NCBI GenBank assembly: GCA_004431415.1
Contig: QPMI01000048.1
Location: forward strand, 62,001-126,000
Source of the DNA: Cyanophora paradoxa CCMP329
Taxonomy: Eukaryota > Plantae > Glaucophyta
Direction: 5' to 3'
Length of the DNA: 64,000 bases
This document shows positions 9,001 to 57,084 of the stretch, one piece after another (within the stretch, counting starts at the first letter, position 1; each line of letters opens with the position of its first letter). The notes beneath the pieces were generated by a model. It was not told the DNA's origin, searched no databases, and saw only the letters and a program-made list of their open reading frames with translations. The position numbers and the translations under genes were made by a program.

Positions 9001-9940
9001 TTCTACGGCCCGCCCACCCCTCCGTCGCTGAGGTGGCCCCGCCCTAGATCTTGAGCCTAGGCCTAGGTCCTGACGCCCCGCGCCCCGTCCCGGCGCGCCC
9101 CGCCCCGCCCCCCGGCAGACGCTGGTGAGCCTGGCGGAGACGTTCGAATTCATCGACTGCTACCTCGACGCCGAGCCCCTCTTCAAGGCCCGCCCCGCCC
9201 CGCCCGAACCGCTTCTGGGACTCTATAAGACTAATTTCAATCTTATCATATGCGGGTCTTTGAAGCCATCCAGGCCTTCGCCTCGATGCTTCTGACTCTC
9301 TCCGACTCTTCGTTTGCGTGCGCGGTGCGCAGAGGGCGTACGAGATCCGCTGCGCGGCGCAGGGCCCCGGCCACAGGGACGCCATCCACGCCCTCGGCAG
9401 GCCCGCCCGCCCGCCTCCTTTCCCTCCCGTTCCCTACAGCTTTCTCTTCTGAACTCTAGGCCTTCGCGCGCAGCCTGGTGGAGTGCCAGATGAAGCAGGG
9501 GCGCGAGGAGGAGGCCATCGAGCTCCTCGAGAAGGTGCTCGACGTGCATAATTATTCCTTTCTACATAGCGGGTTCGCCTATGCATATGGCACGATAAGA
9601 TCAAATATTCAAGGTCTAAATAATCGGGGGACAAGATGGGGAGGGTGCTTGAGACATCGCTTACGTATGTACTGCCAGCGCATCGCTCAGAAAGATCGAA
9701 ACAATAGAAGTCGAAACGCCTAAACCGTTGAACGTGTCCTTATAATCAACACTAAACCATTTAGGAAATAGTCTGACTGGGGTGAGGGGGCAGGAGGTGG
9801 CGGCGGGCGGGGCGCAGGCGGAGGCGGCGGCGCCGCTGCTGTCGCGGGCGTACGAGGCGGCGGGGAAGGAGGAGGAGGGCGCCGCCATCCGCCGCGCCTA
9901 CGGCCTCCCCGCCGCCACCTCCCGCGCCAGCAACCTGTAG
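47..9940 (+). CDS. Multi-exon NACHT/NPHP3-like P-loop ATPase with C-terminal TPR array (5' end upstream of window)
   Basis: Hand-spliced exons give RCLLVLDGLDQL (Walker B, ~350-376), GLDWLP..RVVLSC, and ACSRRGLAEGEI. These are followed by repeated kinesin-light-chain-type TPRs (AELLLQRALGILEKGLGGGHPRVA, RALRVHEATLGPTHPRVARSLSNIA, AEPLLKRALEARELALGKEHALVAESL, RALAIREAASGPAHPSVAE). The last exon is 9794-9940 and ends in TAG. Confidence 0.85.
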
Positions 9941-10108
9941 CGAGCTCGAGGGAGGGTTTGGCCGGCCCGCGCAGGGCCGCTCCAGCGCTATAAGTAGCGG
10001 GCGGGACCGCGTCTTTAAACCGCTGCAGTGACTCGGCTAGTTACTAGTTAGTTAGTTGGTCAATTAGAGATGCATGGCGCGGCCAGATGTACAGCGGCGG
10101 CGGCGACG

Positions 10109-10152
<44 letters not shown>

Positions 10153-10479
10153 CGATGACTGTTGTTCGCAATATTGTGCAACCCTTCGTCGTCATGCGTG
10201 CAACACTTATTCAAATATTAATTTCGCCCCTCGCTTACTCTACAATGTAGTATGTCTACGCGTGGCATATATATCAGGGTCATTATCGCGTCCCTACAAG
10301 GCTATCAACCCCTCTAAATCTGTACTGTCGGCCAGCCCCGAGCTCGAGGCCGTCACACGGCGTCGTCCCAGAGTCGGACCCAGACGGTCAGGCCGTTGCC
10401 GCTGGGCCTAAGCGAGCAAACGGTTTTTTTGAGGCCTCCGTCCTTCCCGTTGATCATGAAGTTTAACTCGTTCATGATC
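9785..10479 (+). repeat. Left copy of direct duplication (last TPR-gene exon + 3' region)
   Basis: Near-identical to 56490-57084. Includes the GCA microsatellite (~10095-10151). This copy has an extra ~110 bp at ~10185-10290. Confidence 0.95.
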
Positions 10480-10772
10480 CGCGTTGCCAGCCGCGGAGCA
10501 GCTGGGAATCACTGTTGCTCTTGTGGCCATGGGCTGTCGATTATGATTATTTGCGCACGCCGGCAGTACTAGTAGAGGTTGGTTAGTAAGCTAGTTATGC
10601 AGCGTGTCCTAGTTAGTCTCTAAATTAAATGCTCGGCTGCATGCGCATGAGCTGCTGTAGACTGTCATCAGCTGCATGCATATGTATTGACTTTTGGCGA
10701 GGAAACTTGAAATTTTGAAAAAAATCTCATTTCACTCGCTACTGTACATGTAGTACTCGCTATATATCGCCA

Positions 10773-11230
10773 TCATTCTCGATGATCGTCGACCTCCTCG
10801 AGATCGGCGCAGTGGCGACACGTGCAGAAGCGCCGGTCGGATGAGCGCGGCGCGCAGCCTGGGAAAGGGTAGATGCGGGGGCCTGGAAGCTTCTTGCCAC
10901 GTGTACTCGTCCTGCCGAACTCCGCGCCGAGCAGCCTCTTGACGCACGCCTCGCAGAAAACGTGCGTCTTGTCCTTCTGGAAAACGAACGCGCTCCGCTG
11001 CTTGAGCGAGGCTCCGCTGCGCGCGCCAGGCTCATGATCAAGTCGACGTCCCAGAAAAGATTTAACAGTTGCTAAACGGTTTTCGATATAGCTATATAGC
11101 GCGCGTGCGCGCGTGCGCGCGCGCACCAGTGGCACTGGCCATGGGCGACGTCGACATTCCCGTCGCGGTTTGGGTTCGAATTCGCCATCCGCCGTAGCTC
11201 CGCTCTTACTTCGGCTTTCCCCTTGGACAT
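10773..11230 (-). pseudogene. Truncated paralog of the zinc finger-GTPase gene (zinc finger only, two Cys lost)
   Basis: Exon 1 reads MSKGKAEVRAELRRMANSNPNRDGNVDVAHGQCH|C. Exon 2 reads GASLKQRSAFVFQKDKTHVFCEACVKRLLG..RIYPFPGCAPRSSDRRFCTCRHC..*. Same intron position as in 28321 and 48862. C>F and C>Y changes relative to those copies. Confidence 0.75.
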
Positions 11231-11867
11231 CGTGGCCTTCGAAGAAGTACGGCAAGCCGATCACCGCGGATCCCGGCGCGGTCGATCGCGAATCCCCGGC
11301 GCGGGCCGATTAACTTGTAATATTGCGGCGCCGCCACGGGCCGGGCGCCGAACAACTAACCAGGCTAGTTCCAGCCTAGTACCATGCAGCTGCAAGGTAA
11401 TATAAGCGCTTTGATTGATTTATCATAGTACTACGGTATGCTGCGTCGATATATGCATATTGCTTTTTTTGTGAATATCCGGCCACAGTCACTGAGTCTC
11501 GGATCGATCGATAGATTCGATACACGATCATACATGTACACCAGACTTTGGGGGTAGGTGTTTGCTTAGCCCGCCATAGAAAGAACTCAGGATTCGGCAA
11601 TTTATTAAATTATATCGCCACGGCACAATTTTTGCAATATTAATTAAATCCGGGCCGGTTTCGCCGTTAAAACATTTCGATATATATCGCGATCGGTCGA
11701 TCAAATTCGGCAGTTAATTTAAAGAAGCAGCAATTTCAGCACTAATTAAAGAAGAAAAAATTTCGATCAGCACGCAATTTTCAGCACTAATTGCTTGAAT
11801 TGCTTGAATTGGGGTAAACCCATATGTACCCGGCAGAGCGGCGAAATTCTTAACAATTATGGCAGTG

Positions 11868-11890: not shown

Positions 11891-12155
11891 GCGAGTTTTT
11901 CTCCAGCAGGGCAGGCCCGGCCGCGGCCAGCCACAACGGCCCACCTGTACTAACGGTACAAATTCACAGTACAATTGCAAGCGCTCGCGATCGCGATCGA
12001 GCTCGCCGGCTCGCAGCAGTGCACCTACGTATACGTGTATACGTGTACGTATATACGCGTACGGGCCTACAGCGGTAGTACAGAGTACTTACTACAGACT
12101 GTACAGCCGCACTCACGTCTGCCGCGGTCTGCGGTCCGGTCCGAATTCGAAGCTA

Positions 12156-12619
12156 CCGTGTAAGACTAATATACCGCGCTGACTTAACTACCGCGCTGCC
12201 AAATTACCGCGCCCAAAAGTTTTAGAACGCAGTAATTTGGTAGCGCAGTACGTATTACCCCCTTTGCTAACAAATAATACATTATCGAAGACGATGGAAC
12301 GCGGTAATTTGGTAGCGCGGTAAAGCGCAAATCGGGCCCAAATTTTTGGAACGCGCTAATTTGTGACGCGGTAATACGCGGCGGTACTGTAGGACGGCTT
12401 TTTTAGCCGTCGTTTTATTTTGCCGTAAATTGCCGAGAGGCCGAATTCGGCAATTTTAAGGGACGGCAATGTTGTGGGGGGTAGAGAGTTTCCAAGGCCC
12501 CCATAGAGCGAATGTCTGGATTCGGCAATTTATCACCACGGCAATTCCGGTTTGGGCGAATTCGGCAATTTTTCACCACGGCAATTTAAGCCGTCCTACA
12601 GTATTGAAGTCTTACACAG
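12156..12619. mobile_element. Tc1/mariner-type MITE (TA TSD) carrying a nested MITE
   Basis: Ends TA|CCGTGTAAGACT ... AGTCTTACACAG|TA. Internal TACCGCG/CGCGGTA repeats. Related to 48318-48563. Confidence 0.75.
12387..12601. mobile_element. Nested MITE with TA TSD
   Basis: Perfect TIR TA|CTGTAGGACGGCTT ... AAGCCGTCCTACAG|TA. Internal AATTGCCG/CGGCAATT repeats. Confidence 0.85.
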
Positions 12620-12665
12620 TAACTAGTAACGACGAAGGCGGGTCCGCCTGCGCATATGCGGCATA

Positions 12666-12941: not shown

Positions 12942-13842
12942 CCCCTGATCCGGCCTGAAATTAAATTAAATAAGCCTGGTTCAAGTCTCATGCATACGTG
13001 CAAGCCTGATTGAAGCCTGACTCGAGCGGCCGTCGAGCCTGACTCCGTGATTTAAGCCTCTTTCAGCCTGATCCAAGCCTGCTAACGTTTCAGCCTAGGC
13101 CTGTTTCAAATCAGGCTCATGAGCTCGCTGAGCCTGTTTCAAATCAGTCCTCCGAAATTAGGCTGAGCTCGAGTCTGTTTCGCCAATTGCAAGCCTGTCT
13201 CAGCCTTATATAATATATTTAAGCCTGTCGTTCGATTCGCCGTCGTTTGCAGTTCGATTGCCCGCCTCGGCCCCGGCCGACTTTAGTGATTCCTTTGACT
13301 GTCCTGTTGCCTGCTCTTGATCCGCCTGATCCGCCTTCTTTGTCCTCCTCGTGCTGTATCCGTAGCTCTGCCCTTTCGCATCGTCCGACGGTCCTGCTTC
13401 GCCTCAGCCTCCGGATCCACGTCGTCTTGTTGTTCCTCTTACTTGCAATTGTCTGCTTCCTGTTCTTTATCTTTCTCAATTTTGTCCTCCGCTTGTTAAA
13501 ACGTTTTTTTTTGGTGAATTACCGGCCACAGCCTCTATAGCTAGTCTACTCCAGCACGTTAGTGATGTAATTTCTTCTGAAATTAATATTGATGGTATCT
13601 CTAGCTCTAGCTCTTCTTCGAATTCGTGTCTATCATCCTCTGTCCCTAGATATCGATCTGCTCGGTCTGGTTCGCTTCCTTTTTTCTTCGTGCTTTCGCC
13701 TAGTAGTTATTTTGCTTTTTGTCTCTATGCCCCCTGGGCAGCCCCCCGCAGTGCTGGTGTCTAGAGACTGTGGCCGGTAATTCACAAAAACAATATTTAA
13801 GCCTAATTTATAAATCAGGCTGAATTCGAAACAGCTGCAGGG
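12942..13842. repeat. AGCCTG-rich repeat (probable non-autonomous DNA element) interrupted by a retroposed insert
   Basis: Many AAGCCTG/CAGGCT units. Weak CCCTG...CAGGG ends with no convincing TSD. Confidence 0.4.
13227..13792 (+). mobile_element. Short retroposed (SINE-like or truncated LINE) insert with 12-bp TSD
   Basis: ATATTTAAGCCT occurs at both 13215-13226 and 13793-13804. Ends in GCAGTGCTGGTGTCTAGAGACTGTGGCCGGTAATTCACAAAAAC, a tail also seen at ~60815-60860, with inverted variants at ~13505-13535 and ~11463-11490. Confidence 0.65.
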
Positions 13843-13874
13843 CAGTGCAGGCTCGCGACCCCCAATTACTAGTA

Positions 13875-16800
13875 GGCGCTGCGCGCGCGTTGGCCTCTCA
13901 TCTCCGCAGCGCCGGCACTGCGTGCGCTGACCAGCTAAGTTATGTAGACTGCCTCTCCGTCAGCAATGGAGCGGCCTCCGCGCTCGCCTCGTCGCCGGTG
14001 CATGCCACCTGGAGCGCCCAGTCGCCGATCTCCGCGCGCAGAGCGAGGAGAGCGGGCGGGTGTGCGCGCGGAGCGGCCCGAAGACCGTCGCAGTTGCGCT
14101 GGTCGACGGGCGGACTCGGTGGGAGGTCTCGTCGGCCGTGGACGTCTCGCCCGGCGAAAAAAAAGTCCGCCTCGTCCCGCCCGCAGGGGCCGTGGTGCGC
14201 GCGCGCGCCGGCGGGCCGAGAGCGCTGCGCAAAGCTAACGGCACTGCGGCAGGGCCCTGACCACTTCGCGGCGTGCATCCGACCGGCTGGCGGCCACCGG
14301 CGGCCAGCCGGCGCGAGCTGGGCGTGCACCGCGCGGGCGCAGGCGCCCCGAAGCGGCCCTCGCGCCGCCCGACGGCTGCGCCCGTGCGCGGAAGCCCATG
14401 GCGTTCTGCGCTGAGGTGCGGCGGCGGCGGCGGCGGCGGCGCGGCGGCGCGAGCCGCCGCGGCGCGCGCAGCGCGGCGGCGCAGCTCGAGACGTTCGCGC
14501 TCCTCCTGGTGCGCCGCCCGCCGCGCGCAGCGCGGCGGCGCAGCTCGAGACGTTCGCGCTCCTCCTGGTGCGCCGCCCGCCGCCGCCGGCCTCTGCGACG
14601 TCGGCGGCGGCGCGCGCCCGGAGGACTGCAGCGCGGCGGCGCAGCTCGAGACGTTCGCGCTCCTCCTGGTGCGCCGCCCGCCGCCGCCGGCCTCGCGCGC
14701 CGCCTCTGCCGACGCGCGAGGAGCGCGGGCCGGATTCGCGTTCGCGAGCGAAGGGTCCCTCTGGCTGCAGGGCTTCGGGCAGCGCCCCGGGCTGCGTGCC
14801 GTTCACGGCGCGTCCTCGCGCGGGATGCGTCGGGTCGCCCCTCGCCCGTGCGCCCCCGCCGCCCTTCCCGCCGCCCGTCCGACGGGGCGCAGGACCCGAG
14901 GGCGTCAAGGTGTGCCGCATCGAGGGCCTGAGCGAGGCGCCCCTGGCGGCCGCGGCCACGCGCCGCGGCGCCGGCCCCGCCTGCCTCCGCTGCACGCCCG
15001 TGCGCCCGACCCGCCCCACCCGCTCGCGCCGCCCGCTCAGCCGGCCGCGCAGGGCGGCGGGCGCAGCGCGGCCGGCGTCGGGGGCGGGGCGCTGGAGCTC
15101 TTCGGCGCCGCCCGCAGCGGCCCGCGGCGGGCGCCTCGTCGCGCTCCCTGGCGCCGGCGCGGTCGGCCGCGCGGCGAGCGCAGCAGACCTTTTTTTTTTT
15201 TGGAAAGCCTGTTGCATTCGTACACACTTGACAACAGTCCCCCGCTCCTCGCCTACCGGATACTGGGATGCTGACTGCAGGAGGAGATAGATGACAAGAG
15301 TGCTACAGCTAGTAGTCGTGTCGAGCTGGTGCTTGAGCTGTAGTCTACCGAGTCGCCTCCAGAACATAATATGCGCCGGTCCTCTAGCAGTGAGCGCGGC
15401 ATTATGAGCTGCACGGTCCTAGATGCCCGCTTGCTGTCTCGTAGAACTTGGCCGTGGTGCGCTGTGTCCTATCTAATAATGGGGGAGATGCGGTAGGGGA
15501 AGAGGGTCCGCGGTGTCGTCGCGCCCGTCGTCGTCGCCGCCGTTCGAAGTCCAGCTCCGACCAGTAGGACGAGGCGCCGCGCTCCGAGACCTGCGCCACC
15601 CCCCCCCCCTCCCCCCTCCCCCCCCCACCCTTCCCTCCCCCCCCTCCCCCGGACCTCCTCGCTAGCCCTGTATTTCAGGATGTCGTGCCCCGAGGGTCGA
15701 CATGAAGGAAGTGATATGTAGCTGACAGGCGCAGTGATGAGCTGAGTAGTTGGCGGGCGTGTCTGGAGGGGCAGAGCAGATGTGGGAGACGGGCCGGGCC
15801 TGTGGGGGTGATCGCGCCATGGTGGATGCGGCGGCAGCCGCACGTTGCGCACATGTCTGGGAGGTATTGGAGTATGCTGCCGGGCTTTCGAGGTCTGCGC
15901 GGCTTCGGGGAAGGCGTCGGCAGTGGCGTCGGCGGCAGCGGCGGCGGCCGGGGCAGCGGGGGCAGCTCTTCCAGTCGGGCTGGCTGTCGGCGTCGGAGTT
16001 TTTTCCGGGGTTCCGAGGTTGCCTGGCCCGCGGGGGCGCGCACGCTAGGCGGCCGCACCGTAGCTTCTGCCATCGGTTTCCATTCGCCTGGGGCAAAGAA
16101 TTTAAAGATGGAGCCCTCAGGGAGCCCTGGAATGGGGTCCGGTGGAGAGGCTGAGGCGTCACGCTTGCCGCGTTTCTGTCCTGGAGGCTTCCGAGGGGCC
16201 GGGGCGTGTTTGCGTTTGCTGCTCAGCGGCTCTGATGGTGTTATCTCTGGGCGACGCTTGGCGCTGGGGGCCGGGGCTGCATCGTCATCCTCCACCGTAC
16301 GTTTGGAGCCAACGGGTGGGGCTTACTGGTGGGCGGTGGCGGGTGCTGCGGGGCCCGTGCTCGTCTCTGAAGCGTTTAGCTGATGTCGGGGGTGCTGCGG
16401 GCGTGGCCGCAGGCCGTTTCACTACGCGGGCGGGGGGCTGCGGGGGTATAGAAGGGGTAATTCCAAGTCGTTCGTCGAGGACGTGGGCTGGGAGGGGCTA
16501 GGATTGCGGACTAGGTGGAATCCGACTCCCGCTGCGCTGTCGATGCAGAGACCTGTAGCGAGGTGGCGGAGGCACAGGCGGGCGGAGGCAAAGCTTGCCC
16601 CGCAGGTGTCGCAGCGAGGGCGTCGCGCTTCGAGTTCGCGGAGGCGGGCGCTACGTCGGGGGGCTGGCTGTCCTGATGCTGAGCTGGGTGCTGACCGGTT
16701 CCTCTTCCAGCTTCTTCCAGGTGAACGCCGCCAGCTCGGCCGCCAGGGCAGGAGCTGCCCCGCCGAGGTACTCCGTGATCGTGACTTGTTGGCGTTCGAG

Positions 16801-19800
16801 CGAGGGGCACCGGGTAGTCGGGGTAAGAGGAATTGGAGCCGGGGCTGGAGTAGGGACCTGAGCCATCATCGAGGCCTTGGTCCGCTTGGTGCGTTTTTTC
16901 CCGGCGTGATGCCGTGTTCCTGTTCCCAGGCTATGACTGCGTCGCAGCGGGTTTTCCAGATGCTCCGTGCATGCTCGTCCGCTAGTTGCACCAAGCCGTT
17001 CACTGCTTGCTTCGAGGTCGTGGCTAGAGCTCGAACTCCGAATGCTCGGAGTAGGACGTGAATTCCTTGCGGGGCGACTAGCTGGAAGAGAGCTCGAAAT
17101 TCGAATTGGTGAAGGAGGTCAGCTGCTTCGAGAATAGCTAGTTTTTGGCCCAGTGGGCAATCCGGAGCGAATTCGAGCGGAGGGCTGGACATGCCGGGTC
17201 TAGTAGGAAGGGGAACAGCGCGTCCCAGGAGCTGCGAAGTCCCGTCGGCTTGTGTTTCATCACATGTTTAAGGACGTGCTCGCGGGCGGCTAGGCGGAAG
17301 ACGTTGACGGCAGTAGCGGCAGCAGGGCATACCCAGATGTGATCGAAGTCTTCCTCTGCGAGGCGGCAGCGGGGGCAAATTGGTCCCTCGGGGCAGATTG
17401 CCGCATAGATGTCCGGGCGCGTGCGAGCACGGACTCGCAGCGTGGCCAAAGATGCAGTCAGCAGTTTTGAGCGCGTCGCGCGAAGCTGAACCCCGGCTTG
17501 GGTCTTGCGGCGTCCATCTTTGCGGTGTGCAGACATGAGGGAGAGCGGCGTCGAGTTGGCCGCCAGTGAAGCGCAGGAGTCTACCAGCTTCGAGTTGACA
17601 GCTCCACTGAATGAAGTCCACGAGCTGGGCTTCCTCGTCCATGTGTTTGCGCGGGTCTCCGTTCACGCGGTACGCCAAGAGGTGGCCGGCGTATCTCTCT
17701 GTGCCGGTCGGCAGCTCCGCAGAGCCAGACTTAAGCTTGGTGCCATAGCGGATAAGCGGGGTAGTAGACCCGCATCCTGCGGGAAGGTATAGGAGGGCAG
17801 GGCAGGGCCCATCATTGCAGCTTTTCGCGAGGCGATCGGCCTGGTCGTTGTAGCAGTCGTACGCTGGATTGGGTACCAGTTCCGCTCCCGGCGCCCGGCG
17901 GGCTCGTGCACGGTTTTTCTTGGTCGGGTCAGGGGCAGGGGCCGGTGGGGGCGGTTTTGAGTTCTCTTCGGCGAGGGTAGCAACCTCAGCGGCACGGAGC
18001 GATGTCGGGCGGGTAAGGTTAGAGAGAATTTCGGCGCGAGGCAGATGCAGCCTCCGTTCTCTTTGTAGTTTTCCTACAACCTGGGCGAAGGCAGCTTCGT
18101 CTGATTTTGGCGGGGGGTCTGCTGCCGGGTCTGGTAATGTGATGAGCGTTGGCGAGGGAGGGCGGGAGTGAGCCGCGAGGGAGTCATCTTCGCTGTCGCT
18201 CGCCTGCGATTTGCCCTCAGGTGTGAAGCAGGTCTCGCCGTCGTCACCGATTTCAGAGTCAGGTGGCGTCGGCAGCGTGCCACCGCGGTGCGAGGTTCGC
18301 CGGCGCCGACTGCCGAGCGTTGGAACAGAGGCTGTTTTTGGAGTCGCAAACGCGAGCTGATCCGAGGGAAAGGGTTCGGGGCCTATTTCAGTGGTGCCGA
18401 GGTAAAGGGCAAGTACAATGAAATGGGTGTAGGTCCGTAGTCGTTCCGGGAAGTCCCGAATGAGTGTGCTGAGGCGCTGCGTCGACGGGTCTCCAGAGAG
18501 GACGTAGGCTGTCATGAGAAGAAGGATCCCGCAGGAGGAGCGGTCGATCTGAATGGGTCCGTCGCAGGCATCTGTCGAGAAGGATGTCCATAGAGGCGGG
18601 GCGAAGGGTTCGTCATCCCGTCGAAGCCAGATTCGGACAAGGTCAAGGCCTAGGGCAGTCCGGTCGGTCGGCTCCGGTTCCCGCCGTCGTAGATTCGGAT
18701 CGAGCGTTGTCTGGGGGCGATGAGAAGGAGGACCCAGTGGTCGGCTGGGTCGCCTTCCCGGTGCGGGAGGCGGGACGGGACCAGAGCGGGGAAGAAAACC
18801 ATGCGATACGACCGTAGTGGTCGTGGTGGCAGATAGTGCAGTGTTTGTGCTGGGTTAAGAGTATGGGGTTGGGCGCCGACACCAGCTGTGGAGATTGCAG
18901 TGGGGAGGAAGCAGACGTCGCCCCCGCGGCACGCCGGTCGGGCTGCCAGGACGTCGAGGAAGGCATCGACCACCCGATCCGGGACTCCACGGGGAAGAGC
19001 GTTAGCGATAGTCCTATAGCTAGTTCGCCCGCCGCTCGGTGCAGGGGGTAGGTCTGTGTATAGGCAGGCAAGGTCTGCAACGTAGAGCGCCGGGGCAGGC
19101 GAGCGGGATGGTCGGCTCTCCGGCGTAGTGTGAGCTCGCGGGTATCCAATGACGGCGTGTTCCGCTGCGTGGTCACCTCGGTTGAGGGCTGGGCCCCAAC
19201 TGATGCGGATTTGGGGAAGCAGGGCTTTCTCGGCCTGCGAGAGAGCTCGAGGGAGGGGCGGCACACGGGGTGGTAGCTGAGGGCTCGTCGCCAATGTTTG
19301 CACAGATGACACCGGTGGCAGCGTGGGAGGAGGCATTGAGTCCGCTGCGGGCTCTGGTGAGGACGTGTCGGCGAGCTTGGGTGCCGATGCAGGGCTAGGT
19401 GCGGGTGGCGACGGGAGCTCCGGTTGTAACGTCGTCACAGTTGGCGGGTCCACGGCAGAGTGGTGGTCATGAGTGGGCCCGGACCAGTCAGCGGGAAAGG
19501 AGGGCTTCGTTGGCTTGTAGCCTTGTCCAGTGAGGCTGAGATCTGAGAGGTAGAGAGCAGCGGCGTACCGGAGCCGGATTGCCGGAGAATTGTGCGCGAT
19601 AATTTGCCGGGGGCAGTCCCAGTCATGCGTGAGATGTAGCCCGATGCAATGTAGTCCGCGGCCGCCAATACTAACAGGGCGTCTTCACCGTGTTCTGCAC
19701 CGGGCCAGCTCGGCGAGTTGAGGGTGCTAGCATCGCAGAACCAGCGAGGGCATTGCGGGGCTGGGCCCCCGGCTTGCTCCTGCCATGCATCTGCCCAGGC

Positions 19801-38238: not shown

Positions 38239-38269
<31 letters not shown>

Positions 38270-38989: not shown

Positions 38990-39202
38990 TTTACTCGCGT
39001 CTGTGCGCCTGTGCAGGTGGCTGCGCCTCTGCTTGCGGCTGGGCGCTGGCGGCCGGCCGCTGGCGGATGACCCTGGTGACGGGTACAGGGCCCCGCGACT
39101 CCAATGGGGGTACGGGCACAGGCCGCTTCCGAGCTATAGCTATGTCTGCGCTCGTTGCAGATAGTTTTAATTGTTCCAACATTGTTCTCTTCGGTAGCCG
39201 CC

Positions 39203-39919: not shown

Positions 39920-39959
<40 letters not shown>

Positions 39960-41520: not shown

Positions 41521-42063
41521 GCTATGGTACTGGCGGGGGCGACTCAGCGTGAGATCTAGATTGTGCGCAAGAGACGGGGCGCCGTAAAGGCCTAGGAGAG
41601 TGATCGTGCTGCTGTGAAGGCAGAGGTGAGAGGCAGGAGAAATCTGCCCCCAGATCTAGACGTCGATCGATCGCGCGACTGCCCCGGTCTGCCCGCGGCC
41701 ACGGCCGCGGGGTACACATAACGCGAAAAGCGACAGCTGCAGCCTTCGCACAACGTTCCCGTTGACTGTAGACCGCGCTGCAGCTGGAGCGGACTATATC
41801 TGGCCTAGTACGAGGCTTTCTGTGTGCTCACCACTGCCTGCTTCGTGATAAAACATGACATTGCCCCCAGGCTGGGCCCCAGCAGCCCGCGCAGATTGAC
41901 ATTGGGCCGGCATCGGGGTTCATACGAAGGTTAGTCGGCGGTATTGATCCAAATAAGCCCTGACGCTATGCGCCGTGAAGAGATAGATGAAAGGGAATCG
42001 AAAAAATGCCCTGACAGCAGCATGCGCAGTTTGGCCTTTGACGGTTACGGGAGAGGCTTTCAA

Positions 42064-45000: not shown

Positions 45001-45221
45001 GCGCGGGCCTCAGCGACCCCGACGTTGACCGCTGGTCCTCCTTCCTGCTGGGCGTCGGGCCGCTTCCGCCTCTTGTCGTTGTGGGAGAGGCACCCGCCGC
45101 GGCAGGCCTGCCGCTGGGATCAGCTGCAGGCGCGGCGCCGGCTTGGCGCGTGAACTCCCCAGAGCCTCTTGCCGGCGCCGGGGCCCCCCTCGGCCCGCAG
45201 GCCCCGCCGCAGCTGGCATGA
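42064..45221 (+). CDS. Orphan multi-exon gene 'B' with Cys/His-containing core and 26-aa tandem repeats (start uncertain)
   Basis: Globular-looking exon ..GPLWSMVSKTDKGDGNTYSNEDALLKAIVLNFICHCCQIF..RCFKSCKEMHKVWSSFNIRG.. is followed by the 44127-45221 exon. Upstream Ser/Pro-rich exons were inferred from GT-AG sites only. Confidence 0.5.
44502..44880 (+). repeat. 78-bp coding minisatellite, ~5 copies (PAQQQPATDLWPLYHVAGPQALPAPF)
   Basis: Directly visible in the sequence and in ORF 44127-45221. Confidence 0.95.
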
Positions 45222-45589
45222 GGCAGCACGCTTTGTTCGGACGGTACGCTTTGTTCTGCAGCGCAGCGCTCGGGCGATGCTTGCACTCACCGCTCCCGGC
45301 AGACGGCTCGAGCCGCCCTTGATGGGGCCCATCATGGGGGCCCCGCGGGGGGTCGCTCCCTTGCGGCTTCAACGCCGCCGCTGCGCCGACCCGGCATCTG
45401 CCCCTGTCCTCCGCCGCAGGGCACGGCGGCTGCAGGCCCCTCCCGCTGACCCCTTCCTCACAGTCACCTTCGCCCCCTCTGACGGCGAGCCCGGCCCTCT
45501 AGCTGCAGCACCCCCCGCTCCCGCAGCACCAGCCCCGGGCCCTCCTGTCCCGGGCCGCACCTGCATCCTGCTCTCTGAGTCTGCCATAT

Positions 45590-47980: not shown

Positions 47981-48317
47981 CAGCGGGCGTGTGTCGGACC
48001 GGACCGCGAGTACGGCCGTAGGCCTGTAGGTGTGCTTAAGCATTGTATGTGCTTAAGCCTGTATACGTAGTACGTACGTAGCTTAAGCTTGAGCAAATGG
48101 AGGTTTGGGTACAATAAAACCTAGGAGGAAAAACCCGCGCCGGCGAAAAACAACAATGGCTCATTGCAATTATTCAGAAGAATTTCACCGTTTTGGGGGT
48201 ACATGGTTCTAACCCAAATTAACCGTTCGAATTCGTCGCCGGCTGCGGGCCTGCGCGCGCGGCGCATGCGCATGCGCACTGCGCAGCCGCTGCGCTTTCA
48301 TGCTCGAGCTAGCTATA

Positions 48318-48563
48318 CCGTAGACGACTTAAATACCGCGCCACATATTACCGCGTTCTAAAATTTCGGCGCCGGTAGGCGCTTTAGCGCGGCACCAAAT
48401 TAGCGCGTTTTCATCAATTTGGGGTACGGCCCATACAAAAGTGTTAGCAAATCTAAGCAAAAGACAATTACCGCGCTACCAAATTACCGCGTTCTAAAAA
48501 TTTTGAGCGCGGTAATTTGGTAGCGCAGTAGTTAAGTCAGCGCGGTATATAAGTCGTCTACGG
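48318..48563. mobile_element. MITE with TA TSD
   Basis: Perfect TIR TA|CCGTAGACGACTTA ... TAAGTCGTCTACGG|TA. Same family as 12156-12619. Confidence 0.85.
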
Positions 48564-48861
48564 TAGCCGCTGCTGACTCAGTGACTCGCCAGTGAGAGTC
48601 GCCACTGAGTCGCCAGCCGCTAGCTATAGCTAAACAGCATCACGCCAGCAGCTATAGCTACTAGTAGTGCTCACTGCTCATATCAGCGGCTGTCGAAGCC
48701 TGTCGACGTCGCAGCGCTCGTATACGTACCGTATATATAGTACCGCGCGCTAACGTTCTGCTGTCTCGATCAGTCACACGGTTATCGCCGTTGAATTGCC
48801 TCTCGCTCTCGCTCAACAACTAGCGAGCGAAGTTGGGGGCCAGGCCTAGGGCGCGGCCGCG

Positions 48862-51800
48862 ATGCCAAGGGAGAAAGATCTCGTCAGACCAGTGCGGGAG
48901 GTGCACGCATACCTCCACTGCTACAGATCCAGCACGAAAAGCTCGCGATCCTATGTCGCCCAGTGCCACTGGTGCGTGCACGTGAACGTGACACGGCTCT
49001 CGCAATCCGTTCGGGCCTGCAGCTGTAGCTGCAACCCAGTTGCGATTTATTAATTGAGCCTGGCGCACGCAGCGGAGCCTCGCTCAAGAAACGGAGCGCG
49101 TTCGTTTGCCAGAAGGACAAGACGCACGTCTTTTGCGAGGCGTGCGTCAAGTCGCTGCTCGGCTCGAACTTCGCCAAGACGCGGGGCAAGAAGCTTCGAG
49201 GGCACCGCGTCTGCCCTGTCCCAGGCTGCGCGCCGCGCTCGTCCGTCCGGACCTTCTGCACTTGTCGCCATTGCGCCGAGGATCGTGGCAACGACGATGC
49301 GGGGGCGGCTGAAGGTCCGCTCGATTCTGATCGTGACCGATCAACATGATTAATATTACTTTAATTTCCAGCCTGACCTGTGATCATGACATGCATATGC
49401 CATTAATTCATAAATATAAATAAGGGGCTTGCAACTCTTATAATCAGGCGCAGCCACGGCTACGGATCCGACGGCAGACACCATACGCATCGCGATCGAT
49501 ATCGACAGCAAACATGACAAAGACGGATCCGGATCTGGAGATGATGGCGAGGTGCCCGGCCCCGCACAGAACAGCACAAAAAGAGCCTCTCGCAATCGAA
49601 ATCAACTAACACAAATATCATTGCGGCCGCAGTTATCCGCCGCCTCGGACTCGCTTAAGCTTCCGGGCTCCAAGGTGAAGACCATCCCCGAGGACGGGAA
49701 GACGTTCCTCAATGCAGCGTGCTGCAAAGTGCAGACGGCCAAGCAGCGCGCAGCTCTCGTCCGGCAGCTCAGCGCCTCGTTCTTCTCGCGCCTGGGTGGC
49801 GGGCTCGACTACACCGCCACCGTCCTCCTGCTCATGATCAACTTCCTGTTCATCATGGTCGCGGCTCTCCTCGACGACCCCACGACTCCCCGTGCGCCCT
49901 CTCGCGCTCTCGTCTATGGGCAGGCTTGTGTTCAGGCCTCGGCTTACGCATTGTTTCTGCAGTGGAGGTCGCGCAAGCCTTGAAGAAAATCTGCCTCGCG
50001 CCTCTCAAGCGCGCCGCTGAGAACGTGGGCGCTCGCTCGCTGTGGGCGCTCATCCTTGGGGAATCCGGGCACGGTTCGCTAATTCTTGATCAGATAGAGA
50101 GAAGTCTAATTCTGAGTTTCGGAATTGCATCTCACATTCTGAAACAGGCAAATCAACACTGGCGGGGGCCCTTTTCAAGCGCCATGCACCCCGCGATCCG
50201 CACTACTTAGAACAGCTTTGCGAGCGCTTCGGGGTCCCCGTCGACATTCCGATGGTGCGTTAATAAAACTTATATCATGTGACTCTACATCGACTTTCGC
50301 GTTGTGCGAATTATGGGAATCTTGTCCTGACTAAATATGTCGCAGGCGTCTGCTTCCACGCCGGTTCCGGCACGTGCGCGTCGCTGGCAGCTGCGATTCG
50401 ATCTCGAAGGGAAAGTTGCGGCTGGGACCAGCGTCTACCTCCAGGTGTGATGTGATGTAAACTGCAGACGTATAAATATGCAGTGCCTGCGAAATCGGTC
50501 GATAAACTGAAAATAAAGGCTGTTCAAGCATTTCTCTGCTCCATGGCCAGTTGAATTCTATGGCACATATTTGTTCGCTACATCTTACACTCCTCGCCCC
50601 TCGTGCAGCTTGGGGTGATCGATTCGAAGTCGAAAACTACGCTGCCGCATTCCTTTGTCGAGGCGAATGGGTCACTCCACTGCGTGCGTACACGATCCAT
50701 GCATATGTGTCTGATGATCATGAATTTCGAATCAACGCCGCACGTGACCGAATTTTTGTATTACAATCGATTGCAGCTGCAAGTCACCACCGACAAAGAC
50801 CTTTACAAGAGAAGCCCCGAGCACACCGAGAAGACGCATCGCCTTTTCTCAATCGGCACCTCGTTTTTCCGACTCTGGTGGAACGACGACGGAACCTGCT
50901 GCTTGCAGGTTCTCGCCCGGACCCTCGCAGACAAGAGCCTGATTACCATGGGCGCCGGGAGTAGCGGAGAGCGCCTCCCGTTGGACGAAAGAGACATCGA
51001 CAAGGCCAATTTCGTTGGCTTTGCACGCTCTGGCTCCAGTCAAGAGCCGAGGAAGCTCTCCTACTCGTGCAGACGAGCTACGGTTCGCGTTCTTAATTAT
51101 GGAAACTTGCGCTCGCTTGCACTCAATAATCTAACATCATGAATGTAATAATCTACACGGTTCAGCGCGCGTGCACTAATATATCACTCGCTGCAGGCGG
51201 CCCGCTTCGCCCTCGTACTCGTTGAAGGGAAGGGGAAGTCGGCGGAGGATGCGCCCGGCCACCTCGAGCTTTACGTCGATTCTGTGGACGGGCCGCGCGT
51301 CGGCGTCGGCAAGCTGAAGAAGGGCAACGTGGACGCTCTCGTCGTCGCCTCCAGTCCATCTTCGGTCCAGGCGGCGACCTTCTGCCCCATCTTTATGGTC
51401 AGTTAAAAACCGTAGCCGAGTCTTTTGCTGTCCCCGAACTAAGGATCAGCTACGAACAGGTCAACTCGAAGGAAAGTCGTGAGCCGCAGTCTGGAGGCTC
51501 ATCGGGCGCAGAAGCCCTTTCCAAAATCCGCGCCCAGTTCTGCAGAACGGAATCGTGGAACAAGCAGCCCCTTCCTCCGTTGGAGTACGAGAAGTTCAAA
51601 GAGTTCGACACCCAGAGGGGAATCGCTCCTTGCGGGAAGCAGCATCGATACACCACTATCGTGGCCGAGGTGCGACGTTCTGCGTTCTGCTTACGCTGCA
51701 CAGCTTTCAAGTATTTTTGAGCTCACTGTACGGGTATATGTGACTTGATGCGAAGGCACTGCGGAGTTGCGGGCCGACGGACACGCCAGCGTTGACGGTT

Positions 51801-54800
51801 GAATGGCGTGACGCGAGCTCGCTCTGGTCTCTAATCAAGAAAGGGCTCCATCTTCATGCTGAACCGATGCCGCCGACACCGCTCTCCACAGACGAGGACT
51901 CGCCGAGTGCACAGGTGATCAAGGAACGAAAGCTGGTCGGAGGAGAGATCGCTGCGTCCTTTGGTCGCGACTGCAATCATCCAGACTACCGCCGCTTAAG
52001 AACCCTCGAGCAAACGCCTGGTGCGCAATTTGTGATCTTGAAATTGAACCCAATTTTTCCGCTTTCGGCTCTTGTAATTGATGGTTTTATTTTGCGGGTG
52101 CAGCTGACCTCACCCTCCCTGTCGACATGGTGGACCGTTTGGGCAAGCGCGAGATCTTCGAAGTGTACAGCACTGCTTCCGAGGGCGTCCTTCTGGGCCT
52201 TCGCATTGCCGGCATCATGTGAGCCTCCGGATCCCCGCGACTGATGCATATGCATGCCGCAAAGCGCTTTTGAATCACGATGGACATTGCAGGACAGCGA
52301 CGGCGTTTCCTGGACTTCTGTGCACTCCCCTGGAGCTGGAGGCGACTGGCGTACGGCGTCTGCCCGCCATCACCTTCAACCTTCCCACTCGGCTCCCGAA
52401 GGGCCTCGACGAAATGGTTGTCATCAGCACGCCGGTGCGCACTTGAATTCGATATTCAGACCTCTGCGATTATTTCTTAGTATTCGTTTAATATTGACTG
52501 CGGGCCCGGGCCGGGTCCTAGGGTGCGAAAACCGACAGAGATCTCCCGCCGTTCGAGCAGCGGCTCGTGAACGAGTCCGCGAACATCGACGTCGACACGG
52601 CTCTTCTCGTGGCTAAAGAGCGAGCAATGACCCACGGGACCGTGCGCTGGCGCCCCATGAACATGAGGCGCCGCTTTGTTTGCCTGGCCTGCTTGTACAT
52701 GTGACCGCTTCGGCAGGTTGGCGACCAGCTTCGGAGGGGCGGGTCGGGCGGCACGAGCTCCACCGTCTGGCACAATTATCTGCATCGCAGCATGCCGTTC
52801 GGTGCGTTGCGAGTTGCAATCGGCGTGGAATTAGCGCTCTATTGCTGGTAACGTTGCAGCCCGCACCTTATATCAATCATGAGCCGCGTACATGTGCAGT
52901 GGCCGTGTGCAATCCCGACAAGGAGATGGAGGAAGATCCTGATCACATTCAGGAAGGGGTGAGTTCTTTTGACCGACGTTTATTCCAGCCTGGTCAACAT
53001 TGCAATTGAACATTTCGGCAGGCGCGAATTGTTGCCGAAACGCTTTGGACACTTGCAGAAGAGACACTTCCGGGAGCGGGGGATGCAGATCTAGACGCCG
53101 AATCGGTGTCGACGTCGCGAGTTGAAGACTGCAAACAACGGACCCTCTGCACGGGTGCGATTCGAATCCGTCAGTCGGCTCTATGCATACGCGCTGATCA
53201 TGAAGCCCGCTCTCCGGCTTATAAACAGGCGGATCTTTCACAAATCCCGACGCCGCCTGGTGATTATGAGGCCACTCTAAAGCACTCTTTGGAATAAATT
53301 AACTTGTACATTGTTGTGGCAGGCTCGGAGTTCTGTGGGAGCAGCTGCCGCTTCTGACCACCGCCTCCCGCACTGAACGCCTCCTTCGCATTGTAGAGGC
53401 CTTTCGTGCCGAGCTCCCTGCGTTGCTCGAAGTTTTGAATCCGGTGCGTCGTTGCCTGCAAGCATATAATTTATGATCTTGACCATGATTAATATTTGCC
53501 GTCCGTGCACTCATGCAGGCGGTAGCTCTCGCGGAGCTCAACAACATCCCCCTAGACATCAAGGACCTGTGCTGGAGGCACGCCGGGCAGCAGATCATTG
53601 CCCGACTCAAGAGACTCCATTATGAGAGTGAAACCCTGCCTGGGCTTTCGGGCAACGATCCAGGCAAGGGGCTGTGGCTCGCCCAGCAGAACATCGCAGC
53701 TGGGATAGCTTCGCAGCAGGCGAGCGGTATCCTGGAGCGTGCAGCGGGCATCGTCGCTCGGGTGACGACTTTGCCGGCACTCGTCACGAATCGCTTCTTC
53801 GAGCTCAATCGCAATCAGGTGCTCCACATGTACAGCTGTAAATGGTCACGAGCTCCTCGAGCTCTATTCACCAACTCGATACATTGCAATTGCTTTCGCA
53901 GAAAGTCAAGGCCGCGTTATCGAGCGTGGGCTCCAAGAAGCAAGCGGAGGCGTTCCTCTCTTACTGGGCGAAATGCGCCGACCCGGAAGACAGCGGACCA
54001 GTGCGCTCGGACGCTCGTTAATTTCCCCAATTTCCCACCTCACGACGAGAAACGGCGCGCAGCTCGGCAACGTCCTGGTCGGAGACCTCGTGGCGAAGGC
54101 AGCGCAGGCTCTGGCAGAGCAAGCCAAGTCCGGCGAGGGAAATACGGCCACCCTTTACGACGTCCTCATCGCGTTTGTTGAAGGCGCCTCACGGCGTCAC
54201 GCTGACTCCTTCCTGGTGCGAAATAAATCACCGAGCGGTTCTCATACTGGCGGGTCTATTCGCGGGCACGTCGTAATTTGGTGCGCGCAGAACCTTGAGC
54301 CACCCCCGGGACTGGGCGAAGAGGAACTGAAGTGCTGGAACACACTCATTGAAAATTTCCATTGTCTTTTCCCAATGTGCGCTTGGTCTGGTCACGATTT
54401 TGTGACGCCTTCAAACTAGACTCGTAACTTTGATTACGAAGGCATGCGCGGATGAAGCTTCGAGTTGTCGTGCACAAGATTTGTGACGAGTGCGAATCAG
54501 CTGCACCTTCGAGGTTAAGAATAACTTCTAATCACCGGTTAAACCAGGATGCTCTCTGGCGACGAGAAAAAAAGCGAGCACATCAAGTCCGTGTGTAATG
54601 TGACAGGCAGATTGCTCGCGGGTCTCTTTCTGGTGCATTTCCGCTTACGCGTTTCTTTTGAGCGCGCTCACCTTCTGCGAATTCGAAGGTGGATCCCCTT
54701 CCCCTCAATCCAGACTCCAAAGCAAGAGAGCCAGCCCCGTTCAAGGTTTAAGCAGATATATCGCTTTTGCTTCCTCATTGCTTTGTCCTCAAAGCAGCCC

Positions 54801-55899
54801 AGTTCGCCTACCTCGGACAACGGATTGAACAGCTGGCAGCTGCCGGCAATGCAACCACAGGGGGATGGCCGTGGCCTGCAGACCTTGGAGAAAAGTTCAC
54901 TGTTGCGGTGCGATGTGCCAACGTTAACGTGCAATGTCTCGCCACCAGTATGACAAGCCTGCAATGCTGACTTCACTGTTGGGCTGCAGGGGCGGCCTAC
55001 AGGCTCCACTTTCGCAAGCCGCGGCACGCGCTCCGTAAGCTAAAATAGACCAACTTCCGAAGTTCAACATCACGTGCACCGGTACCTCGTGCACGTGCTC
55101 ATGACAGTTTGCAGGGGCCGTCAAACCCTGCGCTGGCGAACGAGATTCTGGAAGGGGCGGGCCCTGACGCACCTCCCGGCCTCCACAACTGCGTCTCCCG
55201 CTACCTGAGAGACGCAGTGCGCGCTCGGGGATCTCTTCCGAGTTCAGATTCGAGCGCTATATATATATATTAATGAAATGATTCGTCTACCAGATGGGCA
55301 CCATCGGCATTGGAATTTCGAGTAAGATTTCCACGCAGTTTATGGAGATCTGCGCCTCCGACATTCGAACTCTCTCGCGGTAGGAAGTCTCGCACGCTTG
55401 CAGACTGCAGACTGCAACTTCGTAAAAGTCGCAATTGATCTAGATCTGCGATTTTGCACAGGCCGCGAACAAACCTGGCGCAGTATTTTGGACCGGCGCT
55501 TGCGCCACTGGTCCGCGCCCATTGCGCTGTAAAGGCTATCACCACCGCCCTCACGAAGCTCCAAGCCCAGTGCGAGATTTAAATCTACAGCTGCTGTTGG
55601 CGGTTGAACTGCGGCGCTGGCTGACTCGCTGTACACCGATCAGGCTGCGGGACGAACGCCAGCAAGCTGACATTTCCGTGGGCGCGGCGCGGAAAGCTTT
55701 CGCGAAAGCTCTTGCTATTCAGTCGGACAATGAATTCGAACCCGAGGTCCTGATCGACGAGGACGCCGACAGCGATGCCGAGGCCCCCGCAGTTAACGTT
55801 GCGCCTGCAGCAGGAGCTTCGAATTCCGCTTCCGCGGGCGGTGACACTGCCAAAGGTACCGGTGCTCAGGAGCTCCCCGCTGCTGAAGTCGCAAGTTGA
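48862..55899 (+). CDS. Zinc finger + dynamin-like GTPase, copy 2
   Basis: Same exon structure and motifs as 28321-35409 (GESGH|GKSTL, VVISTP|G, AVCNPDK). Starts MPREKDLVRPVRE and ends ..QELPAAEVAS*. Confidence 0.7.
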
Positions 55900-56489
55900 C
55901 CGATATTGATATACATCATGACTCGCAGTCTCAACTCGCTCGCGCACCGCCAGTTCGACAACTCTTCGCGACCCTGGCCGGGGGCGGAAGCGCCGAGCCT
56001 CCCACTCCCCCGCTCCAGCTGTCTCCGACGACGATCGCGAGTGATCGGCGGATCCAACGGTGGAGTCGACATTGTAGCTATACATATACGCATAGGATTA
56101 TAATTAGGAAACTCAAGCTTGGAGCTTGAGAAAAGAGAATTCTGGCCCAGTGGTTTCGTCTTTCGTCACCGCTTCGTCTTCGAATATTCACAGACTCAAA
56201 GCCATTCATTGAACTTTAGATCTTCCCCTCTCGCCCCCAAAGCCCGATTCAGCCTTCTCAGCCTTCTTAACGGCACCAGCCGCGCCCAGCCGTTGGCTTT
56301 GGGGCTTGGACTGCGCATGCTTCCCGCTCCTGTGTCCGCCTTGGCTTTGGCATCATTCGGCGGGCTGGGGTCGTTTAGATCGTTTATAATTAGGTTTAAA
56401 GGTTTACCCCCTCCCTGCCTGGCCGGACCTATCCGAGCAATGTTTTTTAGCTATAAAGGTTTGGGGGCGGGGGGGAGATCTAGCTATAG

Positions 56490-57084
56490 AGGGGGCGCAG
56501 GAGGTGGCGGTGGGCGGGGCGCGGGCGGAGGCGGCGGCGCCGCTGCTGGCGCGGGCGTACGAGGCGGCGGGGAGGGAGGAGGAGGGCGCCGCCATCCGCC
56601 GCGCCTACGGCCTCCCCGCCGCCACCTCCCGCGCCAGCAACCTGTAGCGAGCTCGAGGGAGGGTTTGGCCGGCCCGCGCAGGGCCGCTCCAGCGCTATAA
56701 TTAGCGGGTGGGACCGCGTCTTTATACCGCACCAGCAACCGTTGCACCTGCAGTGACTCGGCTAGTTACTAGTTAGTTAGTTGGTCAATTAGAGATGCAT
56801 GGCGCGGCCACAGCGGCGGCGGCGGCGGCAGCAGCAGCAGCAGCAGGAGCAGTAGCAGGCGCTGACTGTTGTTAGCAGGCGCACGCAACCCTACAAGGCT
56901 ATCAACCCCTCTAAATCTGTACTGTCGGCCAGCCCCGAGCTCGAGGCCGTCACACGGCGTCGTCCCAGAGTCGGACCCAGACGGTCAGGCCGTTGCCGCT
57001 GGGCCTATGCGAGCAAATTAAACGGTTTTTTAGGCCTCCGTCCTTCCCGGCCCGTTGATCATGAACTTGAACTCGTTCATGATC
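56490..57084 (+). repeat. Right copy of duplicated TPR-gene last exon (56501-56647) + 3' region
   Basis: Intact GCGCAG acceptor, 147-bp exon and TAG. Four differences from 9794-9940. Confidence 0.95.

Follow-up and report, generated by a model that had tools for sequence, protein, structure and literature searches.

The question raised by this locus of the glaucophyte Cyanophora paradoxa CCMP329 is why the terminal exon of an NLR-like gene is present twice, at the two ends of a 46-kb interval, and whether the DNA in between is a mobile island that integrated at the 3' end of the gene. A preliminary description had proposed just this, namely a giant insertion that preserves the gene by supplying a replacement exon, like integrative elements in bacteria or cargo-carrying transposons in fungi. 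In the window, by which we mean the whole analysed stretch of 64,000 nucleotides from contig QPMI01000048.1 (all positions are counted within it), the duplicated exon is found as described, and the 46-kb interval looks like an ordinary DNA-repair duplication, not like a new kind of mobile island.

The affected gene occupies positions 1-9543 on the plus strand and consists of many short exons. It is of the NACHT/TPR type, as judged from matches to TPR_NPHP3, TPR_12 and TPR_10 and from a weak single-exon match to an NWD1-like winged helix, all profile matches having been made exon by exon and not with a joined, spliced protein model. The last exon before the duplicated one lies at 9474-9534 (or to 9543), and the last intron (9535-9793, plus strand) is AT-rich from 13 nt past the donor, has a GC content of 45% and matches nothing else in the window. 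The proximal copy of the repeat, A1 (9784-10479, 696 bp, plus strand), comprises 10 bp of this intron, the exon at 9794-9940 with its stop codon at 9938-9940, and 539 bp of 3' flank. The distal copy, A2 (56489-57084, 596 bp, plus strand), comprises 12 bp of intron-like sequence, the exon at 56501-56647 with its stop codon at 56645-56647, and 437 bp of 3' flank. What is present twice is the last exon, the stop codon and the 3' flank of the NACHT/TPR gene, and as this bracket of 0.6-0.7 kb starts 10-12 bp before the acceptor, it constitutes a complete spare terminal exon. Both copies align as direct repeats with a similarity far beyond chance, and both keep the acceptor AG, an open exon of 147 nt and the TAG stop. 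The exon of A1 is predicted to continue the preceding TPR exon in frame (phase 0), and the TPR gene thereby probably keeps a complete terminal exon. Beyond A2, a gene for a class III adenylate/guanylate cyclase that includes a PAS-like exon (57790-64000, minus strand; PF00211 above the cut-off on two exons) and is unique in the window converges on the repeat, with its end near 57790 and some 700 bp away.

When a CAG/GGC microsatellite is excluded, A1 and A2 differ by 19 substitutions in 488 aligned bases (3.9%, hence about 96% identity), and the divergence falls from 7-9% in the outermost 100 bp on either side to 0-3% in between. A1 has an extra 110 bp (about 10161-10273) with CCCT microhomology at its bounds, A2 has an extra 18 bp, and each of the four differences within the exon changes the amino acid (A>V, Q>R, S>A, K>R). 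The copies are separate loci, as a single locus counted twice would not show the 3.9% difference and the two indels. On the left, the homology begins at GAGGGGGC, 10-12 bp 5' of the acceptor, and further upstream the two sequences are unrelated; on the right, it ends exactly after the palindrome GATCATGAAsTTkAACTCGTTCATGATC, a hairpin with a stem of 9-11 bp that is common to both copies. All four flanks are unique within the window. At the junctions 9783/9784, 10479/10480, 56488/56489 and 57084/57085, diagnostic microhomology or templated filler was not seen. On these features of the preliminary description, that is the repeat with its intact acceptor and stop, the unrelated upstream introns and the completed TPR gene, both analyses agree.

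Some simple origins of the repeat were considered and rejected. A2 is not a processed retro-copy of the 3' end of the TPR mRNA, as it retains 12 bp of intron and has no terminal poly(A), and a retro-copy of a spliced or lariat RNA was dismissed on account of the retained intron bases, the missing poly(A), and a homology start that lies 7 nt 3' of a CTGAC branch-like site. The copies were also rejected as LTRs, as no reverse transcriptase (RT) or integrase was found in the scanned ORFs, the interior consists of 46 kb of host-like paralogues, and the repeat is the predicted in-frame exon of a neighbouring gene.

A1 and A2 exactly delimit a repeat-rich domain of 46 kb with sharp boundaries, in which 57% of the sequence is repeated within the window, as compared to 2% and 0% in the two flanks. 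This interior (10.5-56.5 kb) is a mosaic of local copies of two gene families with no recognisable element. Gene F encodes a RING-like zinc finger and a P-loop (GESGHGKST), and gene G is GC-rich and Arg/Pro-rich; there are three copies of F, four and a half copies of G, two tandem arrays, MITEs, and one poly(A) retroelement. The F and G copies are 76-98% identical and lie in both orientations, with the retroelement nested within, and such a patchwork does not fit the idea of a single cargo cassette. The statement that everything in the interval is repeated or mobile cargo holds for the repeated 57% and for the 6-kb retroelement, but not for the whole of it. A single-step history (tandem, mirror or inversion) that would give the order A1, F1, F2 and A2 was sought and none was found, nor was there any CpG depletion that would mark foreign DNA as silenced.

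Two full copies of F were identified by self-comparison of the window, both on the plus strand: F1 (28257-36194), with a short 3' flank that is interrupted by a G fragment, and F2 (48782-56033), with its ATG at 48862 and its stop at 55897-55899. They differ by 8.7% overall, with 2-14% in most 500-bp windows and higher values in two poorly aligned ones. The truncated copy F3 (10804-11309, minus strand) is limited to the 5' zinc-finger part and shares 86-87% identity with F1 and F2. Between A1 and F3 there are 324 bp (10480-10803), and between the flank of F2 and A2 there are 455 bp (56034-56488), that are unique in the window. As to G, self-comparison detected G1 (13824-22589, plus strand), which is split by the retroelement. 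G2 (37129-38989, minus strand; EukProt model tig00000189_g14323) and G3 (39203-41506, plus strand) form a near-palindrome with a spacer of about 213 bp, and G3 also forms an inverted repeat with G4 (45583-47986, minus strand; EukProt model tig00000189_g14326), which is arranged divergently to F2. The GC-rich 4-kb loop between G3 and G4 (41507-45582) contains five tandem copies of a 78-bp repeat (44481-44877) with a Pro-rich peptide. The half copy, Gp (35484-36120, plus strand), consists of the last exons and the 3' flank of G, some 640 bp, and begins about 70 bp past the F1 stop on the same strand. G1, F3 and a diverged spacer together represent an inverted copy of the unit 45583-49279, and this block beside A1 is 76-87% identical to that unit in the spacer and in F, which is more diverged than A1 is from A2.

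In a codon-position analysis, a third-position excess was absent from the G copies, so that a coding constraint on G is unproven. Searches with G proteins gave, among the matches listed, only the local models tig00000189_g14323 and g14326, and missed the local copies G1 and G3. For F, a protein word search with an exon had no match in the length range covered, and a scan of IMG/VR with F-exon sequence detected no viral relative.

The element that splits G1 (15190-21224, minus strand) is a retro-insertion of 6 kb that ends in poly(A), visible as twelve T's on the plus strand at 15190-15201, and it is flanked by a target duplication of about 230 bp (14960-15189 and 21225-21461, 96% identical, 3.8% divergence). 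It encodes Ulp1-like ORFs; RNase H-like and zf-RVT-like motifs were recognised by eye only, and an RT motif was not found in it. Close by are an ORF for an OTU-like cysteine protease (23417-23806, minus strand; a weak match to PF02338, E = 0.014) and a tandem array of about 3.9 copies of a 979-bp unit (24276-28072, 96-99% identity) that includes pieces related to the F-G spacer. A MITE of 250 bp with 26-nt terminal inverted repeats was found by self-comparison in the G4-F2 spacer (48316-48565), and a diverged relative of it is present at 12152-12373.

Hallmarks of mobility were searched for in the whole domain. Pfam scans covered about 70 ORFs and exons, and in the roughly 50 of these that are interior, no recombinase, integrase, transposase or RT was detected, as had been noted before, the scan being ORF-wise so that intron-split genes could escape it. 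No scanned ORF matched the DUF3435 tyrosine-recombinase captain in Pfam. Inverted similarity between any candidate pair of ends did not exceed chance, and no RNA gene emerged when the whole window was scanned for tRNAs and with Rfam. Exact-product look-ups returned no record for the G2 model, for both A ORFs, for one retroelement ORF, or for either of the minus-strand ORFs that cross the left ends of A1 and A2. A 34-mer common to A1 and A2 had no match in a metagenome scan. Two transposition routes were rejected by their ends: a LINE-mediated insertion of the 46-kb interval, as the outer junctions have no poly(A)/poly(T), and a Helitron-type capture, as there is no CTRR end and the hairpin is wrongly placed.

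The explanation that we tentatively place first, at somewhat less than even probability, is that replication or repair inserted the DNA and left the bracket behind as a long target duplication, and that local duplication expanded the insert; the repeats would not be an attachment site used by a mobile element. We infer a template-switch mechanism with the following direction of copying and order of events. At the hairpin palindrome with which the TPR 3' flank closes, a fork or break would have primed ectopic copying of an F-G gene unit or cluster, and synthesis would then have switched back to the original template at a point some 0.7 kb upstream, just 5' of the last acceptor. The terminal exon and the 3' flank would thereby have been copied twice, which would have produced the layout A1, insert, A2. 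A1 would be the original exon, still preceded by its own intron, and A2 a redundant orphan beside the original downstream neighbour, the convergent cyclase gene; if A1 is the original, the TPR gene was never interrupted, and no replacement exon was needed. Before or after this event, the insert may have been enlarged by inverted and direct F and G copies, the two tandem arrays, the ~640-bp G fragment, the MITEs and the poly(A) retroelement. Such a repair insertion is favoured by the exact coincidence of the repeat-rich domain with A1 and A2, by the palindrome at the 3' boundary of both copies, and by the presence of a second insertion with a long target duplication in the same window, the 6-kb poly(A) element. 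The G2/G3 palindrome, the G3/G4 inverted repeat and the inverted partial unit at 10.8-22.6 kb are typical of template switching, the distance from A2 to the cyclase gene is a normal tail-to-tail spacing, and the lack of detectable terminal inverted repeats, tRNA, Rfam family, recombinase, transposase or RT points in the same direction. Also the divergence of A1 and A2, edges included, is of the same order as that of F1 and F2 and of the retroelement duplication, and Price et al. 2019 (PMC6704402) report a probably haploid genome in which 34.7 Mb, about a third of the assembly, are duplicate features. Against it, no source copy was found, the listed G proteins both stemming from this locus in a search of low power, the junctions have no informative microhomology, and a target duplication of 0.7 kb is uncommon with an insert of 46 kb or even with one unit of 10 kb. 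Moreover, the F3/G1 block is more diverged than A1/A2, which at face value means that parts of the interior predate the bracket. Relative ages are all open to distortion by gene conversion.

Just this apparent age of the interior parts fits a different history, in which there is no island at all: the F/G cluster always lay between the TPR and cyclase genes, and A2 is an independent copy of the ~0.6-kb TPR 3' end that was later placed in the F2-cyclase spacer as a templated insertion during break repair. We regard this as possible though somewhat doubtful, and as nearly as likely as the repair insertion. The window has a like fragment in Gp, which is of the same size class and also a 3' gene end, situated about 70 bp past the F1 stop just as A2 is situated about 590 bp past the F2 stop on the same strand, and the G-family proteins come, among the matches listed, from this locus only. 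By chance, however, such a fragment would land in the one spacer that closes the domain in roughly 1 in 10 to 20 cases, and the flanks of A2 show neither a target duplication nor a filler signature. That the bracket is an artefact of the PacBio contig, through a chimeric join or through repeats placed in the wrong order, is improbable: repeats of 1-7 kb with 88-98% identity, palindromes included, make the region hard to assemble, but the substitutions and the 110-bp and 18-bp indels that separate A1 from A2 and the uniqueness of all four flanks speak against such an artefact. The flanks are also not collinear, unlike those of two alleles, and a haplotig mis-join was rejected for this reason and because the organism is reported to be haploid (PMC6704402).

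Least probable of all is the mobile or integrative island of 46 kb in the last TPR intron, with A2 as the original exon, A1 as the carried replacement and the repeats acting like attL and attR. A bounded, compositionally mixed and repeat-rich domain between direct repeats and an intact TPR gene are what one would expect of it, and the assignment of the two exons had been drawn from the AT-rich intron before A1 and the supposedly host-style intron sequence before A2, where there is a C-rich stretch 150-270 bp upstream. However, the TPR gene has at least three further AT-rich windows of 200 nt (40-48% GC), the 25-mer before A2 is not specific, as both the interior and the cyclase gene contain pieces of it, and the 258 bp upstream of A2 lack the C-skew typical of TPR introns. 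Composition does not discriminate between the copies, and the claim that A2 is original and A1 a replacement is therefore unsupported. An island is further disfavoured by about 50 ORFs with no mobilising enzyme, by the missing terminal inverted repeats and tRNA or other RNA genes, and by an interior of local copies of differing identity instead of one cassette, and a second copy was not found in the G protein search among the matches listed, the power of which is low. It is likewise very improbable that a genuine eukaryotic island uses a ~0.6-kb copy of exon and 3' UTR to enter and leave an NLR-like gene at its 3' end, through a Campbell-type circle or an undetected recombinase, and leaves the host gene whole in the way of ICEs at tRNA genes.

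If true, a mobile island would mean that an alga has an ICE-like integration system that preserves its target gene, the first of this kind; the evidence here does not support it. What the locus does offer is a clear, bounded example of new DNA built beside an NLR-like gene, by a process of repeated local copying in both orientations, with long target duplications and with spare 3' gene ends beside new copies. As the preliminary description had suggested, the interval could in principle be lost by recombination between the repeats (0.6 kb, about 96% identity), and the repeat pair predicts a presence/absence polymorphism of 46.7 kb.

Like bacterial ICEs and genomic islands at the 3' ends of tRNA and tmRNA genes, the locus has an accessory block between direct repeats, one of which, A1, would restore the 3' end of the TPR gene in frame. 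Unlike here, ICEs have a tyrosine or serine recombinase, att repeats of tens of bases and a recurrence with the same ends, none of which was found, and the target at this locus is a eukaryotic protein-coding exon with a repeat of 0.6-0.7 kb. The Starship transposons of Pezizomycotina fungi are similar in their size of tens of kb and their host-like cargo genes, but their hallmarks, a DUF3435 captain at one end, target sites in the form of short direct repeats and in many cases terminal inverted repeats, were all undetected here, where the interior is made up of local paralogues. Non-LTR retrotransposon insertions with long target-site duplications have a small counterpart in the repeat-insert-repeat structure at 15190-21224 with its poly(A) and 230-bp duplication, whereas the outer junctions of the 46 kb have no such poly(A)/poly(T), and an RT was not found even in the 6-kb element. 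There is also a likeness to segmental (low-copy-repeat) duplications and to template-switch insertions, complex rearrangements of the FoSTeS/MMBIR type, from which the locus differs in that the mechanism is here deduced from architecture alone, without junction microhomology or a source copy. Like in those cases, there are high-identity direct and inverted copies of 0.2-7 kb close together in a duplication-rich region, palindromic pairs, and a putative insertion that is flanked by the re-copied target and free of transposon hallmarks, with repeats that could mediate deletion by non-allelic recombination.

The structure bracketed by the two copies of the NACHT/TPR gene's terminal exon is true and neatly bounded, and the best explanation for it is segmental duplication of an ordinary kind in a genome prone to duplication, beside a member of a large NLR-like family. 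In the PacBio assembly of Cyanophora paradoxa, which has 67.6% G+C, duplicate features make up 34.7 Mb of 99.9 Mb, and the genome is probably haploid (Price et al. 2019, PMC6704402). The repeat had been recognized in the preliminary description and is real, as self-comparison of the window places direct copies at 9784-10479 (A1, proximal) and 56489-57084 (A2, distal). Both consist of a G-rich stretch of 10-12 bp, an acceptor AG, an exon of 147 nt with TAG at its end (9794-9940 in A1, 56501-56647 in A2), and a 3' flank of 437-539 bp. The homology starts at GAGGGGGC, 5' of which the sequences are unrelated, and ends directly after a palindrome, which folds in A1 as well as in A2. With a CAG/GGC microsatellite left out, 19 of 488 aligned bases (3.9%) are substituted; these concentrate at the edges (7% in the first and 9% in the last 100 bp), with near-identity in between. 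In A1 there are 110 additional bases with CCCT microhomology at their bounds, in A2 there are 18, and all four differences in the exon change an amino acid.

On the left side, the preceding TPR exon is in phase with A1, and profile searches on exons and ORFs taken one at a time assign TPR_12/TPR_10/NPHP3-type repeats and, weakly, an NWD1-like winged helix to the gene. On the right side, a class III cyclase gene on the minus strand ends near 57790, tail to tail with A2 at a distance of about 700 bp. Towards the 3' end of the TPR gene, at 9188 and 9406, two introns seemingly start with GC (AG/GCCCGCCC) and not with GT; as judged by eye with the exon frames as a guide, they are possibly of the GC-AG type, with an unusual C-rich start.

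The 46 kb between A1 and A2 consist of copies of two genes, F and G, and of insertions. Gene F is about 7 kb long, has 55% G+C (67.6% in the genome), and encodes a RING-like zinc finger and a septin-like GESGHGKST P-loop that is split by an intron; its Pfam matches are weak, and no relatives were detected in the searches made. There are two full copies, F1 (28257-36194) and F2 (48782-56033), and a 5' fragment of 86-87% identity on the opposite strand, F3 (10804-11309). Overall, F1 and F2 are 8.7% divergent, with values of 2-14% for most 500-bp windows. Between 28257-35465 and 48782-55959 there are long stretches whose identity is 98% in each of the three frames, a sign of probable recent gene conversion. 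Behind each full copy, in the same orientation, lies a piece of about 0.6 kb with the last exon or exons and the 3' flank of another local gene: the G fragment Gp behind F1, the TPR fragment A2 behind F2. These pieces may be borrowed terminators, may mark break-prone 3' ends or, with two cases, may be due to chance; the parallel is curious, but with n=2 and noticed post hoc, no argument is rested on it.

Gene G is Arg/Pro-rich, has 74-79% G+C, and matches no Pfam family. It is present as G1 (13824-22589, plus strand), G2 (37129-38989, minus), G3 (39203-41506, plus), G4 (45583-47986, minus), and the plus-strand fragment Gp (35484-36120) with the last exons and the 3' flank. A word search gave two proteins with EukProt names, of which tig00000189_g14323.t1 corresponded to 38939-37129 and tig00000189_g14326.t1 to 47785-46143, placing the window on a single contig of the PacBio assembly. 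These were the only two G-family proteins among the matches of a search limited to 8000 candidates, both from this locus, which is weak evidence against a mobile island as G1 and G3 were not returned. Head to head, G2 and G3 make up a near-palindrome (37167-41009) with arms of about 1.8 kb, 90-96% identity, and a spacer of about 213 bp. G3 and G4 are likewise inverted relative to each other, over 2.3 kb and with 96% identity, and enclose a 4-kb loop. This loop holds a 78-bp repeat (44481-44877, 5.1 units, 96%), whose plus-strand translation is a Pro/Gln-rich peptide repeat, PAQQQPATDLWPLYHVAGPQALPAPF, with no family match. Within the G core of 600 bp at 46783-47382 and its counterparts in G1-G3, there are 0-3 differences per 300 bp, whereas the flanks are 5-13% apart, and the substitutions show no excess at third codon positions. 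This pattern, with near-identity in all four copies, points to gene conversion and not to constraint at the protein level.

G4 and F2 diverge from a spacer of about 0.9 kb, in which there is a 250-bp MITE (48316-48565). It is bounded by terminal inverted repeats of 26 nt, TACCGTAGACGACTTAAATACCGCGC, and has palindromic ACCGCG motifs inside. A second MITE copy of 76% identity lies in the F3-G1 spacer (12152-12373), and from 22589 down to 10804 the same G-spacer-F arrangement is present as an inverted, older copy, with 76-87% identity in spacer and F. Directly 5' of F1 is a tandem array (24276-28072; 979-bp unit, about 3.9 copies, 96-99%) that includes short pieces akin to the F-G spacer and the MITE and whose ORFs have no Pfam matches; an OTU-like ORF is found at 23417-23806. 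G1 is interrupted by a poly(A)-ended insertion of 6 kb (15190-21224), which begins on the plus strand with twelve T's and is enclosed by an unusually long target duplication (14960-15189 and 21225-21461, about 230 bp, 96%). In G2, this target stretch is present only once. Together, these three features identify the 6 kb as a minus-strand retro-insertion. Its ORFs gave a weak Ulp1/C48-like lead (HW..L.I...I.V/YDG motifs; Atlas 0.81), RNase H-like ADRLAK and zf-RVT-like CPRC..H...CP motifs were seen by eye, and for reverse transcriptase neither a motif nor a Pfam match was found.

That this is a bounded, unusual domain holds, as sequence repeated within the window makes up 57% of the interior versus 2% of the left and 0% of the right flank. 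Its description as a mobile-looking cargo island is not supported, as the interior is no single cassette but is made of local paralogues of 76-98% identity that lie in either orientation, plus a nested insertion. Pfam scans of about 50 interior ORFs agree with the earlier impression that no mobilizing enzyme is visible (no recombinase, integrase, transposase, or reverse transcriptase), tRNA and known RNA genes were not found, no pair of candidate ends has inverted similarity, and there is no poly(A) at the outer junctions of the 46-kb interval. It is very improbable that the block is something like an integrative island. Composition also fails to identify A2 as the original exon. The AT-richness of the last TPR intron is confirmed, at 45% G+C and with no C skew, but 200-nt windows of 40-48% G+C occur in the same gene (2751-3025, 4326-4700, 8301-8550) and in the cyclase gene. 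The 258 bp ahead of A2 have 57% G+C and zero skew, whereas TPR introns are C-skewed, and pieces of the supposedly host-style 25-mer recur inside the interior (13535, 19014, 41552, 48620, 53087, 55440) and in the flanking genes.

For the origin of the bracket, two non-mobile readings are not decisively separated. A break or a stalled fork at the palindrome that ends the repeat could have led to ectopic DNA being copied in, and if synthesis restarted about 0.7 kb upstream, the bracket would be a long target duplication, with A1 as the original exon and no replacement needed. Such an event would account for the exact coincidence of the copies with the limits of the repeat-rich domain, for the boundary at a hairpin, and for the normal tail-to-tail distance between A2 and the cyclase gene, and it fits a locus rich in inverted and direct copies. 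A2 could also be an independent gene-fragment copy of about 0.6 kb, in support of which is Gp, about 640 bp long and lying on the strand of F1 about 70 bp past its stop, as A2 lies on the strand of F2 about 590 bp past its stop; this, however, needs a chance landing in the sole spacer that closes the domain, and the long target duplication is regarded as slightly more probable. Nor do relative ages decide between the two: divergence is of similar magnitude for A1/A2 (3.9%, with 7-9% at the edges), for F1/F2 (8.7%), and for the target duplication of the retroelement (3.8%), and gene conversion is evident among the G copies. In its layout of repeat, insert, and repeat, the 46-kb bracket resembles the 6-kb retroelement inside it, but the mechanism would differ.
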